DNA of 64,000 nt from Phaeosaccion multiseriatum (lineage: Eukaryota > Protista > Ochrophyta, other classes), in assembly GCA_965112735.1 (NCBI GenBank), contig OZ218953.1:930001-994000 (forward strand). Reading direction: 5' to 3'. The notes under the pieces are model-generated. The model searched no databases and was not told where the DNA came from. It worked only from the letters and a program-made list of their open reading frames with translations. Position 1 is the stretch's first letter; each line of letters opens with the position of its first letter. Positions 3,392 to 9,901 of this stretch are shown one piece after another. The position numbers were made by a program, and so were the translations under genes.

Positions 3392-3873
3392 GCTCTCTTG
3401 TGCTTTGCAACCACGTTTACATACAATATGATTATGATGGGGGAGTAAGTCAATTAACCCCATTGGCGACCATCTCTCTTTTTTAAAAAATCTCGCTACG
3501 ACGATAAAACACCAAAGTGAAGATCTTAGGGGGAGCTGAGGCCTACACAGTGTACTCGGGTTTGGATAGCTCAAAGTGCGCTTGAAGAAGCGGCGGGGAG
3601 AAAGTGGGCAGCTGAAATTTGAAGGCCCTTCCGCCCATTGACGAGCGGGGGGGGGGGGGAAAGTGTACAGGCTTTAGAGCACGAGAGGTGAAGGGCTTCG
3701 GAGATCTTACGGAGAACATACGTGACGTGAGGGTGGGCATCTGAAAGTGCGATTGTTGGAGCTGTTGGGGGGGAGTGGGCAGGTGAAAAGTGAGGGTCCA
3801 TCCACCCGTGGAAGACGGGACTGTGCAAAATTTTCTTTTCTTTTCTTTCATCGAGACTCATCCTTGGAGAAGC

Positions 3874-6309
3874 ATGAGTGATACGTGCGGCGCGCGGGCC
3901 TTGAGTACTGTGGCCAGCCTTTTCCCGACACACAAGGCCCTGTGGGGAGTGTGCAAGGAGGTGGACAAGCTCACGTGCCGCACTCTGGTCCTCAGGGCCA
4001 ACATGCCTCGTGCTTTCAAGAGGCGCATGCTTAGCATGCTGGAGGAGCAGCAGCAGAAAGACGAGGAGAAGCACCATACTGCATCTTCGTCTTCTTGGTC
4101 GGGGACTAGGCCTGTTGCTGCTGCAGATCAGGATGCGCTCGAAAGGGGGGGGAAGCGGGCAAAGGGAAGAGCACAGCGCCAGCTGCCCGAGAGCTCACAG
4201 CGCAATGAGACTGGGCCGGGAAATGAGAGGCGCTCATTTTGCGTGACCGCCGTGCGTCTCGGCGCCCAGAGTGGACGCGGTTCTGCCCCTGAAGAGGCCC
4301 TCGTTGTCAAAGTGTTGTCCATGTTGCCACGGTCGGTGAAGGGTGTGCTCTTCTCTGACGCTTTCAATCAGTCTGACGTGTTGTTGCCGAGCTCGCTGGA
4401 GGAGGTGACATTCGGGAGGGACTTTAACAGACCCATCGCTTTCCCTGCCTCGCTGAGGAAGCTTACTTTCCACAAGCTTTCGGCGTTCAATCAGCCTGAT
4501 GTGTTGTTGCCGAGCTCGCTGGAGGAGGTGGCATTCGGGAAGTACTTTGACAGACCTATCGCTTTCCCTCCCTCGCTGAGGAAGCTTACTTTCTGCAGGA
4601 GTTCGGTGTTCAATCAGCCTGATGTGGTCCTGCCGAGCTCGCTGGAGGAGGTGACGTTCGGGAGGTACTTTAACAGACCCATCGCTTTCCCTCCCTCGCT
4701 GAGGAAGCTTACTTTCTCCAGTATCTCTAAGTTCGATCAGCCTGATGTGATCCTGCCGAGCTCGCTGGAGGAGGTGAGATTCGGGAGGTACTTTAACAGA
4801 CCCATAGTTTTCCCTCCCTCGCTGAGGAAGCTTACTTTCTGCAGGAGTTCGGTGTTCAATCAGCCTGATGTGGTCCTGCCGAGCTCGCTGGAGGAGGTGA
4901 GATTCGGGAGGCACTTTAACAGACCCATCGCTTTCCCTCCCTCGCTGAGGAAGCTTGCTTTTGCTGAGGACTCGCTGTTCAATCAGCCTGATGTGATCCT
5001 GCCGAGCTCACTGGAGGAGGTGACGTTCGGGAAGTACTTTAACAGACCCATCGCTTTCCCTCCCTCGCTGAGGAAGCTTACTTTTGCTGAGGACTCGCTG
5101 TTCAATCAGCCTGATGTGATCCTGCCGAGCTCACTGGAGGAGGTGACATTCGGGAAGTACTTTAACAGACCCATCGCTTTCCCTCCCTCGCTGAGGAAGC
5201 TTACTTTTGCTGAGTACTCGCTGTTCAATCAGCCTGATGTGATCCTGCCGAGCTCGCTGGAGGAGGTGACGTTCGGGAGGTACTTTAACAGACCCATAGT
5301 TTTCCCTCCCTCGCTGAGGAAGCTTACTTTTGCTGAGGACTCGCTGTTCAATCAGCCTGATGTGATCCTGCCGAGCTCACTGGAGGAGGTGACGTTCGGG
5401 AGGGACTTTAACAGACCCATCGCTTTCCCTCCCTCGCTGAGGAAGCTTACTTTTGCTGAGGACTCGCTGTTCAATCAGCCTGATGTGATCCTGCCGAGCT
5501 CACTGGAGGAGGTGACATTCGGGAAGTACTTTAACAGACCCATCGCTTTCCCTCCCTCGCTGAGGAAGCTTACTTTTGCTGAGTACTCGCTGTTCAATCA
5601 GCCTGATGTGATCCTGCCGAGCTCACTGGAGGAGGTGACGTTCGGGAGGGACTTTAACAGACCCATCGCTTTCCCTCCCTCGCTGAGGAAGCTTACTTTT
5701 GCTGAGGACTCGCTGTTCAATCAGCCTGATGTGATCCTGCCGAGCTCGATGAAGGAGGTGACATTCGGGAAGTACTTTAACAGACCCATCGCTTTCCCTC
5801 CCTCGCTGAGGAAGCTTACTTTTGCTGAGAACTCGCTGTTCAATCAGCCTGATGTGATCCTGCCGAGCTCGCTGAAGGAGATGACATTCAGGAGGCACTT
5901 TAACAGACCCATAGTTTTCCCTCCCTCGCTGAGGAAGCTTACTTTTGCTGAGGACTCGCTGTTCAATCAGCCTGATGTGATCCTGCCGAGCTCGCTGGAG
6001 GAGGTGACATTCGGGAGGGACTTTAACAGACCCATCGCTTTCCCTCCCTCGCTGAGGAAGCTTACTTTCGGCTGGAAAGCGCAGTTCAGTCAGCAGTTGA
6101 TTCTTCCTTGTGGTGTGGAGGAGGTGGTGATGGGTGGCGGCTTTAATCATCCCTTGCAGCTCCCTGCGTCTCTGCGGAGGCTGACGCTGAGAGAGAGGTA
6201 CACCTGTCCATTGACGGACCTGCCTGCTGGCCTCCAGTACCTCCTGGTTGGGAGGCAGTGCCCGCTGCCCGCAGATCTGCCGGATGGGCTCCGCGTGGAG
6301 TACTTCTAA
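3874..6309 (+). CDS. Intronless FNIP-repeat protein with possible N-terminal F-box-like segment
   Basis: ORF 3790-6309, first ATG 3874. About 14 tandem 41-aa (123-bp) units FNQPDVILPSSLEEVTFGxxFNRPIAFPPSLRKLTF. N-terminal LSTVASLF..LWGVCKEV is F-box-like. Confidence 0.9.
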   Translation: MSDTCGARALSTVASLFPTHKALWGVCKEVDKLTCRTLVLRANMPRAFKRRMLSMLEEQQQKDEEKHHTASSSSWSGTRPVAAADQDALERGGKRAKGRAQRQLPESSQRNETGPGNERRSFCVTAVRLGAQSGRGSAPEEALVVKVLSMLPRSVKGVLFSDAFNQSDVLLPSSLEEVTFGRDFNRPIAFPASLRKLTFHKLSAFNQPDVLLPSSLEEVAFGKYFDRPIAFPPSLRKLTFCRSSVFNQPDVVLPSSLEEVTFGRYFNRPIAFPPSLRKLTFSSISKFDQPDVILPSSLEEVRFGRYFNRPIVFPPSLRKLTFCRSSVFNQPDVVLPSSLEEVRFGRHFNRPIAFPPSLRKLAFAEDSLFNQPDVILPSSLEEVTFGKYFNRPIAFPPSLRKLTFAEDSLFNQPDVILPSSLEEVTFGKYFNRPIAFPPSLRKLTFAEYSLFNQPDVILPSSLEEVTFGRYFNRPIVFPPSLRKLTFAEDSLFNQPDVILPSSLEEVTFGRDFNRPIAFPPSLRKLTFAEDSLFNQPDVILPSSLEEVTFGKYFNRPIAFPPSLRKLTFAEYSLFNQPDVILPSSLEEVTFGRDFNRPIAFPPSLRKLTFAEDSLFNQPDVILPSSMKEVTFGKYFNRPIAFPPSLRKLTFAENSLFNQPDVILPSSLKEMTFRRHFNRPIVFPPSLRKLTFAEDSLFNQPDVILPSSLEEVTFGRDFNRPIAFPPSLRKLTFGWKAQFSQQLILPCGVEEVVMGGGFNHPLQLPASLRRLTLRERYTCPLTDLPAGLQYLLVGRQCPLPADLPDGLRVEYF

Positions 6310-6918
6310 ATCACCTAAGAAACTGAAAATGTGATTGTGAGAGTGTGCGTGTGTGTGAGTGTGCCCGTATCTCTGTGTCTCCGGGGCCCTTGAGGGGGCG
6401 GTTACTCCCCCTCTTGGGCGGGGAGGGGGAGTGCAGGACCGGCTCCGCGGTTGAGCCGACCCAGGAAGGCGCGCTCTCGCTCCGAGAGCCACATCTGGTG
6501 GCTGCAGCTGACGAGACGGCGAAGTCTGGTCATTATGATAGGGAATGTGCAGGAGCATACGACAATTGTGAAATGTATGTGCAACATCTACCCTTTTATG
6601 CCTCTCTCTCGATTATCCTCTCTCTTGGGAGAAGGTCACCAGTTTCTTCCTGTATGAATGGACTTACTAAGGCAGATCATATTTCCCCGGCATCATCATT
6701 TCTGTTAAATGCGTAGCGCAAAGTCCAAAGACGAGCATCGTATGTCTGGCCAATACCGCAGGTCGGGCAGTAGATCAACTGGCAGTGACATCCTTTGGAT
6801 CTCTTGCTCTCCTAGCAATGAGGCAGAGAAGCCCAGATGATACCAAAGGCCAATCCCGAGCTGTGACTCGCGCTTGACTCCTCCGGCCGCCGCAGTCGAC
6901 ACTCATCAATGGTAATTG

Positions 6919-9243
6919 TCAACCCCCACCGGTGACTCGCATCACCACTCTCCCCGGATTGTGTTCATCTTCCCATACTTCGACGCCCGGCCTCTCCAGC
7001 AGATAGGACAACACCGCGGGCTTGAGAACGCTGACGCCGTGCTCGCTGCCTCGGCCTCGACCCGTGACAACTTTGATCTCAGCCCCCACCTTCGCCTCTG
7101 AGAGCACGTGACGAAGCGCTGCCTTGCTCGTCCCCCTGGTGAAATCGTGCAAGTCCACCAACCTCCCAGGCTCCAGCCAGTGTGTGAAGACTCCTTGCGA
7201 CAGGGCCTTTGCGTACAGCTCATCAGCAGCCTCCTCATCACCACCCTCCTGCACAGCATCAATGATGGCGCTGTAGGTCCTTTCGCCAGGAGCGAGTCCT
7301 TCTCCAGTCATCTCCCTCAGTAAGCCCCATGCCTCCACGTGTTGGCTGGCCTTGGCGAAAGCATTAATGGTGGCGTTGTAGCTGACTTCATCCGGCTTGA
7401 TGCCCTCCGCCTTCATCTCCCTCAGTAAACCTAACGCCTCCACGTGTTGGTTGGCCTTGGCGCAAGCATCAATGGTGACGTTGTAACTGACTACATTCGG
7501 CTTGATGCCCTCCGCCTTCATCTCCCTCAACAACTCCATTGCCTCCACGTGGTGGCCGGTCTTGGCGTAAGCATCAATGGTGGCGCTGTAGCTGACTACA
7601 TCCCGCTTGATGCCCTCTGCCTTCATCTCCCTCAGTAAACCTAACGCCTCCACGTGTTGGCTGGCCTTGGCGCAAGCATCAATGGTGACGTTGTAGCTGA
7701 CTACATTCGGCTTGATGCCCTCCTCCTTCATCTCCCTCAACAACTCCATTGCCTCCACGTGGTGGCCGGTCTTGGCGTAAGCATCAATGGTGGCGTTGTA
7801 GCTGACTACATTCGGCTTGATGCCCTCTGCCTTCATCTCCCTCAGTAAACCTAACGCCTCCACGTGTTGGCTGGCCTTGGCGCAAGCATCAATGGTGACG
7901 TTGTAGCTGACTGCATCCGGCTGGATGCCCTCCGCCTTCATCTCCCCCAGTAAGCCCAATGCCTCCACGTGTTGGCTGGCCTTGGCGCAAGCATCAATGG
8001 TGACGTTGTAGCTGACTACATTCGGCTTGATGCCCTCCGCCTTCATCTCCCTCAGTAAGCCCAATGCCTCCACGTGTTGGCCGGCCTTGGCACAAGCATC
8101 AATGGTGGTGTTGTAGCTGACTGCATCCGGCTTGATGCCCTCTGCCTTCATCTCCCTCAACAACTCCATTGCCTCCACATGTTGGCTGGCCCTGGCGCAT
8201 GCGTTAATGGTGGAGCTGTAGCTGATTTCATCCGGAGCGAGTCCTTCTGCCTTCATCTCCCTCAGTAAACCCATTGCCTCCACGTGTTGGGTGGCCCTGG
8301 CGCATGCGTTTATGGTGGCGTTGTAGCTGATTTCATTGGGAGTGAGTCCTTGTGCTTTCATCTCCCTCAGTAAGCCCACTGCCTCCACGTATTGATTGGC
8401 CTTGGCGCATGCATTAATGGTGGAGCTGTAGTTGATCACAGTTGGAGTGAGTCCTTCTGCCTTCATCTCCCTCAACAACTCCATTGCCTCCACATGTTGG
8501 CTGGCCCTGGCGCATGCGTTTATGGTGGAGGTGTAGCTGATTTCATCCGGAGCGAGTCCTTCTGCCTTCATCTCCCTCAATAAAAGTAACGCTTCCACGT
8601 GTTGGTTATTGGCCTTAGCGCATGCGTCAATGGTGGAGCTGTAGCTGATTACGTCTGGAGCGAGTCCTTCTGCCTTCATCTCCCTCAGTAAACGCATTGC
8701 CTCCAAGTGTTGGCTGGCCTTGGCGCATGCGCTAATAGTGGCATTGTATGTGATCACATTTGGCCTGGGTCCTTCCTCCTTCATCTCAGCCAGAAGTTTC
8801 AAAGCGCCCTTCCACCGCCCGCACTTCCCAATCGCGGAAATTGCAGCATTAAAACAGTACTGGTCGGGATTGAGGCCTTCTCGCCGTGCGCCCTCCAGAG
8901 TAGGCGCAACCCTCTTCCAATCCTTGCTCCTCCCCAGAGCTTGGATCTCCCTCATAAGCCGTATCTGTCTCGACTTGTCACTCCCCCCAGTAGAGTAGCA
9001 AGACCATTGCTGCGGCAGGTGCTGCTGGTGATGGAGAGTAGAGTCAGTGCCCCCTTCAGCACAACCCGTTCCTCCTGGTGCTGCGGGTCCTCTTCTATTC
9101 CTGCCAATGCAAGAGGAGTAGCACGCTCTGGTCACCCCCCTCAACGACATCGCCCTTATCATCAGCATTGTTGTCTCGCGGTCTCTCCCTCCCCCACTCG
9201 ACCTTGGCAGCCAGCTGTGAGTTTGGGCGGAGGACCAACACAT
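6919..9243 (-). CDS. Intronless P-class PPR protein with C-terminal SMR domain (PPR-SMR #1)
   Basis: About 16 35-aa PPR motifs; C-terminal VDLHDFT...VVTGRGRGS..GVSVLKP SMR motifs. Arg/Ser-rich segment from ATG 9168 (MLMIRAMSLRGVTR) resembles a mitochondrial presequence. Confidence 0.92.
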   Translation of the reverse strand: MCWSSAQTHSWLPRSSGGGRDRETTMLMIRAMSLRGVTRACYSSCIGRNRRGPAAPGGTGCAEGGTDSTLHHQQHLPQQWSCYSTGGSDKSRQIRLMREIQALGRSKDWKRVAPTLEGARREGLNPDQYCFNAAISAIGKCGRWKGALKLLAEMKEEGPRPNVITYNATISACAKASQHLEAMRLLREMKAEGLAPDVISYSSTIDACAKANNQHVEALLLLREMKAEGLAPDEISYTSTINACARASQHVEAMELLREMKAEGLTPTVINYSSTINACAKANQYVEAVGLLREMKAQGLTPNEISYNATINACARATQHVEAMGLLREMKAEGLAPDEISYSSTINACARASQHVEAMELLREMKAEGIKPDAVSYNTTIDACAKAGQHVEALGLLREMKAEGIKPNVVSYNVTIDACAKASQHVEALGLLGEMKAEGIQPDAVSYNVTIDACAKASQHVEALGLLREMKAEGIKPNVVSYNATIDAYAKTGHHVEAMELLREMKEEGIKPNVVSYNVTIDACAKASQHVEALGLLREMKAEGIKRDVVSYSATIDAYAKTGHHVEAMELLREMKAEGIKPNVVSYNVTIDACAKANQHVEALGLLREMKAEGIKPDEVSYNATINAFAKASQHVEAWGLLREMTGEGLAPGERTYSAIIDAVQEGGDEEAADELYAKALSQGVFTHWLEPGRLVDLHDFTRGTSKAALRHVLSEAKVGAEIKVVTGRGRGSEHGVSVLKPAVLSYLLERPGVEVWEDEHNPGRVVMRVTGGG

Positions 9244-9594: not shown

Positions 9595-9901
9595 TCGACC
9601 CCTGACACGCTATCGCTCACATTCTCGATAGCGCGCTATCGCGCCCCGGCGGGCCCGATAGCGCGCTATCGGCCGCCGGCCAATAGCGGATAGCGTGCCG
9701 GCTGGCGCCGGCCGATAGCGGATAGCGCGCCGGCTGGCGTCAGCTCTCCCCCCCCCCCCCGGTGCGGTAGCAGCTGACGCTGGCGATAGCGGATAGCGAG
9801 CCGGCTGCGCGCCGGCGATAGCGGATAGCGCGCCGGAGATAGCGGATAGCGTGCCGGCTGGCGCCGGCGATAGCGTTAGCGGATAGCGTGTCAGGGGTCG
9901 A
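9595..9901. mobile_element. MITE, 307 bp, perfect 20-bp TIR, 6-bp TSD CTTTGA
   Basis: TCGACCCCTGACACGCTATC (9595-9614) and its reverse complement (9882-9901). CTTTGA at 9589-9594 and 9902-9907. Internal GATAGCG arrays. Confidence 0.9.

Follow-up and report, generated by a model that had tools for sequence, protein, structure and literature searches.

What kind of protein is encoded by a long reading frame of near-uniform repeats in the nuclear genome of an alga, how did it come to be built in this way, and what would it do? The question is raised by a minus-strand open reading frame (ORF) at positions 6919-9243 of the window, by which we mean the whole stretch of 64,000 nucleotides analysed here (positions 930,001 to 994,000 of contig OZ218953.1 of the Phaeosaccion multiseriatum assembly GCA_965112735.1). 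A sequence-only reading had described the ORF as a natural "designer" nuclease, in which an array of pentatricopeptide repeats (PPRs) with a variable RNA code is joined to an Smr domain and reprogrammed by repeat shuffling. We find an intact, intronless (single-exon), nuclear gene for a P-class PPR-SMR protein. In its array, and in those of its many paralogues, the repeat scaffold is kept near uniform while the two base-specifying residues toggle between ND, NN, S/T-D and S/T-N.

The gene, its repeat array and its Smr tail

The ORF is open over 774 codons in a single frame, which continues uninterrupted across 1.6 kb of repeats. The probable coding sequence (CDS) is slightly shorter, covering 6919-9168 on the minus strand (749 codons plus stop) and beginning with the family-wide start MLM(I/M)RAMSLRG. 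We take the ATG at 9168 as probably the true start because about 30 copies share the leader that follows it and many paralogues carry stop codons just 5' of the common MLMMR start. The similarity at the DNA level to 54 paralogous loci extends from about 6900 to about 9190 and ends there, marking the borders of the CDS. The upstream ATG at 9243 is an unlikely start, since the in-frame extension that it would add (MCWSSAQTHS..., 9169-9243, minus strand) is common to only two paralogues, L014 and L050 on contig 10, and many paralogues have stops in that region. The extension is probably homology of the 5' untranslated region and not coding. A mobile element as the carrier of the gene was ruled out; paralogue similarity stops at the CDS borders, and the flanks hold only small dispersed repeats.

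The array comprises 15 P-type PPR motifs (14 of 35 residues and one of 36) encoded at 7285-8862 of the minus strand, as located by Pfam, Tandem Repeats Finder and placement of the motif register. Pfam PF13041 scores 558 bits against a cut-off of 30 (15 stretches, with 14-15 PPR stretches at E 6e-172), and PF01535 scores 374 bits against a cut-off of 25. Tandem Repeats Finder bears out the 105-bp period given by the sequence-only reading, with 13.7 copies over 7308-8748, 84% matches and 0 indels. We placed the motifs in the standard register ourselves, naming the first motif unit 0. The pairs of residues at positions 5 and 35 then read, in array order, NN ND SD TT SN ND SD NN ND NN NN ND SN ND NG, exactly the list that had been proposed. 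Standard code pairs (ND, NN, SD, SN) occupy 13 of the 15 motifs, the exceptions being TT and NG.

The repeats had also been called nearly identical and a mosaic of a few variants. In general, DNA identity between units spans 70-98%. Near identity describes only units 7-13, which are 84-98% identical in DNA among themselves, but it is too strong for units 1-6 (73-90%) and for the first unit, only about 50% identical to the others. The mosaic is borne out: the units fall into two types, ..INACA..GLAPD and ..IDACAK..GIKPN/D, with a third, ..DAYAKTGHH.., which alternates inside units 9-13. Ranked by sequence, the best matches of the array among solved structures are laboratory designer PPRs (dPPR-U8G2, E 2e-144), which come above the natural proteins PPR10 and PAP2. 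Between the array and the Smr domain, and linking them, is a degenerate 16th PPR-like motif (7180-7284, minus strand, beginning ERTYSAIIDAVQEGG), which can be aligned with designer PPR motifs and is kept in the paralogues.

The Smr domain, of the subfamily-2 type, lies at 6922-7158 on the minus strand, with VDLH at residues 696-699 and TGRG at residues 727-730. In a scan with the whole protein, Pfam PF01713 (Smr) reaches 22.8 bits, under its cut-off of 25.7. The last 90 residues alone reach 27.4 bits, and PF01713 is matched by all 42 of the aligned paralogue tails. A profile made from the paralogue Smr tails finds the solved Smr domain of human N4BP2/B3BP at E 1.6e-5. The AlphaFold2 model of the tail (predicted local distance difference test, pLDDT, 84) has its secondary-structure elements in the order expected for Smr, and its top Foldseek matches are the Smr domains of N4BP2/B3BP (template modelling, TM, score 0.65), MutS2 (TM 0.68), PAP2/pTAC2 and YdaL. 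The assignment to the PPR-SMR proteins thus holds, with a tail that by itself beats the Pfam cut-off and a predicted fold that fits solved Smr domains.

LDXH and TGXG are the motifs of subfamily-2 Smr domains with proven nuclease activity (PMC3858433, PMC6662315). The D, L and H of the first motif never vary across the 42 paralogue tails, and conservation of ITGRG is 90% or higher. The L that opens LDXH is replaced by V or M, an aliphatic/nonpolar swap of the kind that the XaDXH form of the Smr motif permits (PMC12787238). Judged from the sequence and the model, an Smr domain is present with both nuclease-linked motifs intact, and its cleavage activity is putative.

The paralogue family, its code and its recombination

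A six-frame search of the alga's own assembly (67.1 Mb, 22 contigs) returned 139 matches that merge into about 55 loci, a count to be read as a lower bound (at least 55 loci). The loci that we fetched contain 60 ORFs with PPR arrays, and 44 of these retain an intact Smr tail. At least 22 family loci are clustered on contig 3, between 3.2 and 4.4 Mb. Two others, L006 and L024, lie on contig 4, about 135-145 kb from the PPR-SMR gene; they are tandem paralogues about 7 kb apart that share one leader. L006 (G000:C4:798271-802644) is intact and has 18 units. L024 (G000:C4:791004-795068) ends right after its 16th unit, has stops in the tail remnant and is a probable pseudogene. The two differ by inserted units and by code changes. 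Most copies in the family have open frames of 600-1200 codons despite their highly repetitive DNA, and a few (L003, L005, L013, L024) have stops or no Smr tail.

An exhaustive profile search with the Smr tail found no close relative in 1.84 billion public representative proteins, the best match having 70.6 bits and none reaching E 1e-30. The nearest public PPR-SMRs by Smr tail have heterogeneous arrays, with a mean unit identity of 0.29 in the best match; a few short public fragments among them reach at most about 0.54-0.58. As far as these comparisons go, the family is lineage-specific, in an alga with a red-type plastid. The kind of protein is known. What appears new, within our searches, is that dozens of copies combine a designer-like uniform scaffold and a four-letter code with an Smr domain of their own.

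We extracted 885 gap-free 35-residue units from 60 frames. The mean amino-acid identity between units of the same gene has a median of 0.72 in the family (0.68 in the gene at 6919-9243), compared with 0.29 in 120 public PPR matches. Six standard pairs (ND, NN, SD, SN, TD, TN) account for 90% of the units, and every paralogue has a code string of its own. Together, the unit identities and the share of standard pairs uphold the earlier proposal that code residues vary on a uniform scaffold.

Rates were measured on 311 independent nearest-unit pairs with at least 90% DNA identity. Overall, the ratio of nonsynonymous to synonymous differences (pN/pS) is 0.52, and the scaffold positions are far lower. 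Relative to the overall pS of 0.078, positions 5 and 35 have a ratio of 1.2 (pN 0.092), positions 1 and 22 a ratio of 1.5 (pN 0.116), and all positions except 5 and 35 a ratio of 0.47 (pN 0.036). The four fastest of the 35 positions are, in order, 1, 35, 22 and 5, which places 35 second and 5 fourth. The code residues, expected by the sequence-only reading to show excess variation, are thus among the fastest but not uniquely so. Because they do not outpace positions 1 and 22, the rates do not demonstrate a positive selection particular to the code.

The gene at 6919-9243 draws on more than one branch of this family. Contig-3-type genes come nearest to its leader and to units 0-6 (..INACA..GLAPD); the best match of the leader is L042, at 88.6%, and L006 is outside the leader's top ten. 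For units 7-14 (..IDACAK..GIKPN/D), for the degenerate unit and for the Smr tail, the nearest genes are L006 and L024, its neighbours on contig 4; the tail matches L006 best, at 94.7%, with the next best at about 91%. The split in nearest paralogue puts the junction of the two parental types in unit 6 (8125-8229, minus strand), which starts as EISY..INACAR.. and ends as ..GIKPD. Unit identity further shows that a block of two units (210 bp) has been duplicated in tandem (units 9-10 and 11-12; 7495-7914, minus strand): unit 9 is 97% identical to unit 11 and unit 10 is 98% identical to unit 12. All five differences between the duplicated units are nonsynonymous, and two of them fall on code residues, N35D (9/11) and N5S (10/12).

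From these matches we conclude that the gene is a chimera of two subfamilies with a recent two-unit duplication, and that new alleles in the family arise by point changes, by gain and loss of units and by recombination between paralogues. Reprogramming by repeat shuffling had been suggested from the window only, and paralogue recombination and unit duplication have indeed rebuilt the gene. A dispersed repeat 3' of the gene, at 6636-6834, also occurs in the 3' flank of L024 (83%), and this fits a contig-4 origin of the gene's 3' half.

Predicted location, predicted target and competing explanations

The leader is conserved and Arg-rich (9079-9168, minus strand; residues 26-55 of the 774-codon ORF), and by composition it is of the mitochondrial presequence type. 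Its sequence, MLMMRAMSLRGVVRTCYSSCIGRNRRG, is common to about 30 paralogues. Among the first 30 residues, 6-8 are basic and none is acidic, and in every 9-residue window the hydrophobicity stays below what a signal peptide requires (Kyte-Doolittle value at most 1.6). The plastid is of the red type, because rbcS is plastid-encoded, lying on the plastid contigs. Import into a complex red-type plastid needs a signal peptide. A leader without one therefore fits a mitochondrial presequence and not complex-plastid import. The leader looks like a mitochondrial presequence, from which we infer import. That the protein is probably mitochondrial, as the earlier reading had it, agrees with an Arg-rich leader without a signal-peptide core, while the location itself stays a prediction.

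The interpretation that we favour, and hold to be reasonably probable, is that the gene encodes a P-class PPR-SMR protein from a lineage-specific recombining family, that the protein is mitochondrial and binds an RNA of about 15 nt, and that its Smr domain cuts or docks. The protein would be imported into the mitochondrion. There its PPR tract would bind about 15 nt of single-stranded RNA, with the N-terminal motif at the 5' base, near 5'-YUGnAUGYUYYUAU-3'. The Smr domain would then cut the bound RNA a short distance 3' of the site, as in plant SOT1, or, alternatively, would dock the protein to another partner. In SOT1, the PPR tract binds RNA and the Smr domain cuts about 20 nt 3' of the site; the protein has been re-engineered to new targets, and it is the only PPR-SMR for which RNA cutting is proven (PMC6662315). 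The family as a whole would consist of organellar factors for site-specific RNA processing whose genes undergo birth and death, evolving as restorer-of-fertility-like (RFL) PPR genes do and with a nuclease-type domain built in.

Several points weigh against this interpretation. RNA binding, cleavage and expression are all putative, and the targeting call comes from simple composition measures and not from a trained predictor. Several plant PPR-SMRs act without known cleavage (PMC6662315, PMC3858433), and purifying selection on the Smr core is just moderate (median dN/dS, the ratio of nonsynonymous to synonymous substitution rates, 0.46). Positions 1 and 22 of the repeat change as fast as the code, and with positions 5 and 35 at only about 1.2 times the synonymous level, relaxed constraint is possible. 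Finally, the exact target did not turn up on the organelle contigs. When the predicted site was sought there, the exact pattern YTGNATGYTYYTAT had 0 matches on the mitochondrial contig C17 and on the plastid contigs C18-C22. In the whole assembly the exact pattern is at chance level, with 13 nuclear matches compared with 8 for a reversed control; with one mismatch allowed there are 570 matches, compared with 359 in the control. The code patterns of three paralogues, L046, L017 and L026, searched with up to two mismatches, gave no mitochondrial match and one chance-level plastid match, to an AT-rich pattern whose control count exceeded the real count. Their nuclear matches were not above control.

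Of the organelle contigs themselves, 18-22 carry psbA. C17 is multimeric: it contains cox1 in four identical copies, of which one is inverted, and about 56 kb separate the first copy from the second. Such a structure would be either an artefact of assembly or a genuine, rearranged concatemer.

In the nuclear contigs, a near-target that differs by U to C at one ND motif, YTGNATGYTTCCAT, has 53 copies compared with 1 in the control, belonging to two dispersed repeat families. These repeats contain TTGAATGTTTCCAT or CTGCATGCTTCCAT and are found on contigs C1, C2, C3, C7, C8, C13, C16 and others (for example at C7:543923, 550211 and 556497), some spaced 6.3 or 9.7 kb apart. We rejected the repeats as a target and judge the excess to be due to chance, since between 5 and 31 one-step variants were implicitly tried and the other paralogues have no such excess. 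Taken at face value, the 53 copies, the extreme diversity of the code strings and the clustering and recombination of the genes would favour a role in defence or conflict outside the organelles, with viral or transposon RNA being cut in the cytosol or nucleus and the genes diversifying in an arms race. We consider such a role highly improbable. A chance match to some repeat family is expected given the number of variants tried, the three other paralogues have no nuclear excess over control, the common leader resembles an organellar presequence, and the great majority of PPR proteins are organellar. That the family is in conflict with selfish elements or viruses, a possibility which the sequence-only reading had raised, is pure speculation.

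The same features can be read with the Smr domain as a contact surface. The protein would then be an RNA binder or adaptor and not a nuclease, its PPR tract binding and stabilising organellar RNAs or aiding their splicing or translation and its Smr domain contacting proteins, ribosomes or nucleic acids. Proposed precedents are pTAC2/PAP2 in the plastid polymerase, PPR-SMR1 in intron splicing and PPR53 in RNA stabilisation. Cleavage is undemonstrated for most characterised plant PPR-SMRs (PMC6662315, PMC3858433), the Smr domain of PAP2 is among the Foldseek matches, and the dN/dS of the Smr core is only moderate. Both nuclease-tied motifs are nevertheless retained through the family, which in Arabidopsis is true of GUN1 only (PMC3858433), and a binding role alone seems to us possible but doubtful. 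Improbable, too, is an expansion that is neutral or selfish, driven by duplication and gene conversion, in which each copy does little and the copy at 6919-9243 is perhaps redundant or decaying. It would explain the uniformity of the units through concerted evolution, and the variable code positions 5 and 35 through relaxed constraint combined with easy A-to-G transitions (N/S, D/N). The neutrality-compatible rate at the code, shared by positions 1 and 22, agrees with this, as do the copies with stops or without an Smr tail (L003, L005, L013, L024) and the lack of an organellar target in the exact and three-paralogue scans. It accounts poorly for the long frames that most copies keep open through repetitive DNA, for an overall pN/pS well under one with scaffold positions far lower, for a conserved leader and conserved Smr motifs, and for code pairs that are standard in 90% of units where random residues would be expected. 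The mitochondrial PPR-SMR that binds RNA and cuts or docks is the reading that we retain. Its most ambitious extension, a natural library of programmable RNA endonucleases in which each paralogue would cut another organellar or selfish RNA in an RFL-like nuclear-organelle arms race, we regard as rather unlikely. In that reading, toggling of the code, duplication of units and paralogue recombination would keep generating new specificities, with the nuclease built in and in a lineage remote from plants.

Comparison with known repeat proteins, and the neighbourhood

PPR-SMRs are a small, conserved and poorly understood group, known in plants (8 in Arabidopsis), green algae, heterokonts and dinoflagellates (1-5 per species) (PMC3858433, PMC12787238). 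The plant members SOT1/PPR53, GUN1, SVR7, pTAC2/PAP2 and PPR-SMR1 share with the algal family a P-class tract followed at the C terminus by an Smr domain of subfamily 2, with TGXG and a motif of the LDXH type. Their location is organellar, and the specificity of SOT1 has been altered by editing its code residues (PMC6662315). They differ in number and in uniformity. Plants have about 8 such genes, which are conserved single-copy orthologues and whose repeats are heterogeneous, whereas the alga has at least 44 intact copies with near-uniform repeats and different codes.

In their mode of evolution the algal genes resemble the RFL genes, which are likewise clustered and fast-evolving P-class genes, with 15-20 motifs and a mitochondrial location (PMC5075784). 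The recombination and duplication mechanisms that we see in the algal copy are those described for plant RFL genes (PMC5075784). RFLs differ in having no nuclease-type domain, in acting on RNA through partners that cleave, in their less uniform repeats and in forming a plant-specific clade. The algal gene falls outside that clade, having an Smr domain and a host with a red-type plastid. Clustering and chimerism, both RFL-like traits, are seen in the alga; positions 5 and 35 are fast as well, but 1 and 22 are equally so. We know of no cytoplasmic male sterility or comparable conflict in Phaeosaccion multiseriatum.

The designer proteins dPPR and cPPR resemble the algal array in using one consensus 35-residue scaffold on which positions 5 and 35 are changed among ND, NN/NS, T/S-N and T/S-D. 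They are synthetic and without Smr, and the algal units differ from one another also at the non-code positions 1, 22, 33, 15 and 9. The transcription activator-like effectors (TALEs), to which the sequence-only reading had compared the protein, follow a like logic of near-identical repeats with two hypervariable specificity residues, shuffled by recombination. TALEs are bacterial effectors that bind double-stranded DNA, and the likeness is one of analogy only; we reject homology, as there is no link in sequence or fold.

The multi-"SACEK" PPRs, reported only in dinoflagellates, heterokonts and some cryptophytes and haptophytes (PMC12787238), also have consecutive similar P-type motifs, with x-A-C-x-K at positions 9-13 (N/D/S-A-C-A-K in the algal units). 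A comparable expansion of PPR-SMRs is not described. Among our 120 public PPR matches, some from protists have fairly uniform units (0.5-0.7 mean identity), and none of these uniform-repeat matches has an Smr domain.

Reviews have called for scaffolds and Smr domains from which programmable RNA endonucleases could be made (PMC6662315). As dozens of natural PPR-SMRs on a designer-like scaffold that use the four-letter code almost exclusively, the family would offer many matched natural examples on which the PPR code and the rules of Smr cleavage could be tested. It would also mean that evolution has reached the consensus-repeat solution of protein engineers, and would provide a non-plant parallel to RFL evolution and a new system for nuclear-organelle co-evolution. 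If the proteins are mere binders or largely redundant, the family would be a striking yet modest case of concerted repeat evolution.

Next to the PPR-SMR gene and tail-to-tail with it is an ORF of 839 codons on the plus strand (3790-6309) that encodes 14 FNIP repeats (Pfam E 2e-103) and is likewise homogenised in its DNA, with a 123-bp period and 94% matches. Downstream of the PPR-SMR gene, a dispersed repeat at 6330-6532 is found as well in the flanks of L008 and L045 (86-91%). On the other side, about 430 bp upstream of the probable start, there is an element of about 300 bp (9600-9897) that resembles a miniature inverted-repeat transposable element, with terminal inverted repeats CCCTGACACGCTATC / GATAGCGTGTCAGGG and internal GATAGCGGATAGCG..GCCGGC repeats. 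Copies of this element occur near three other loci of the family, L017, L040 and L051.

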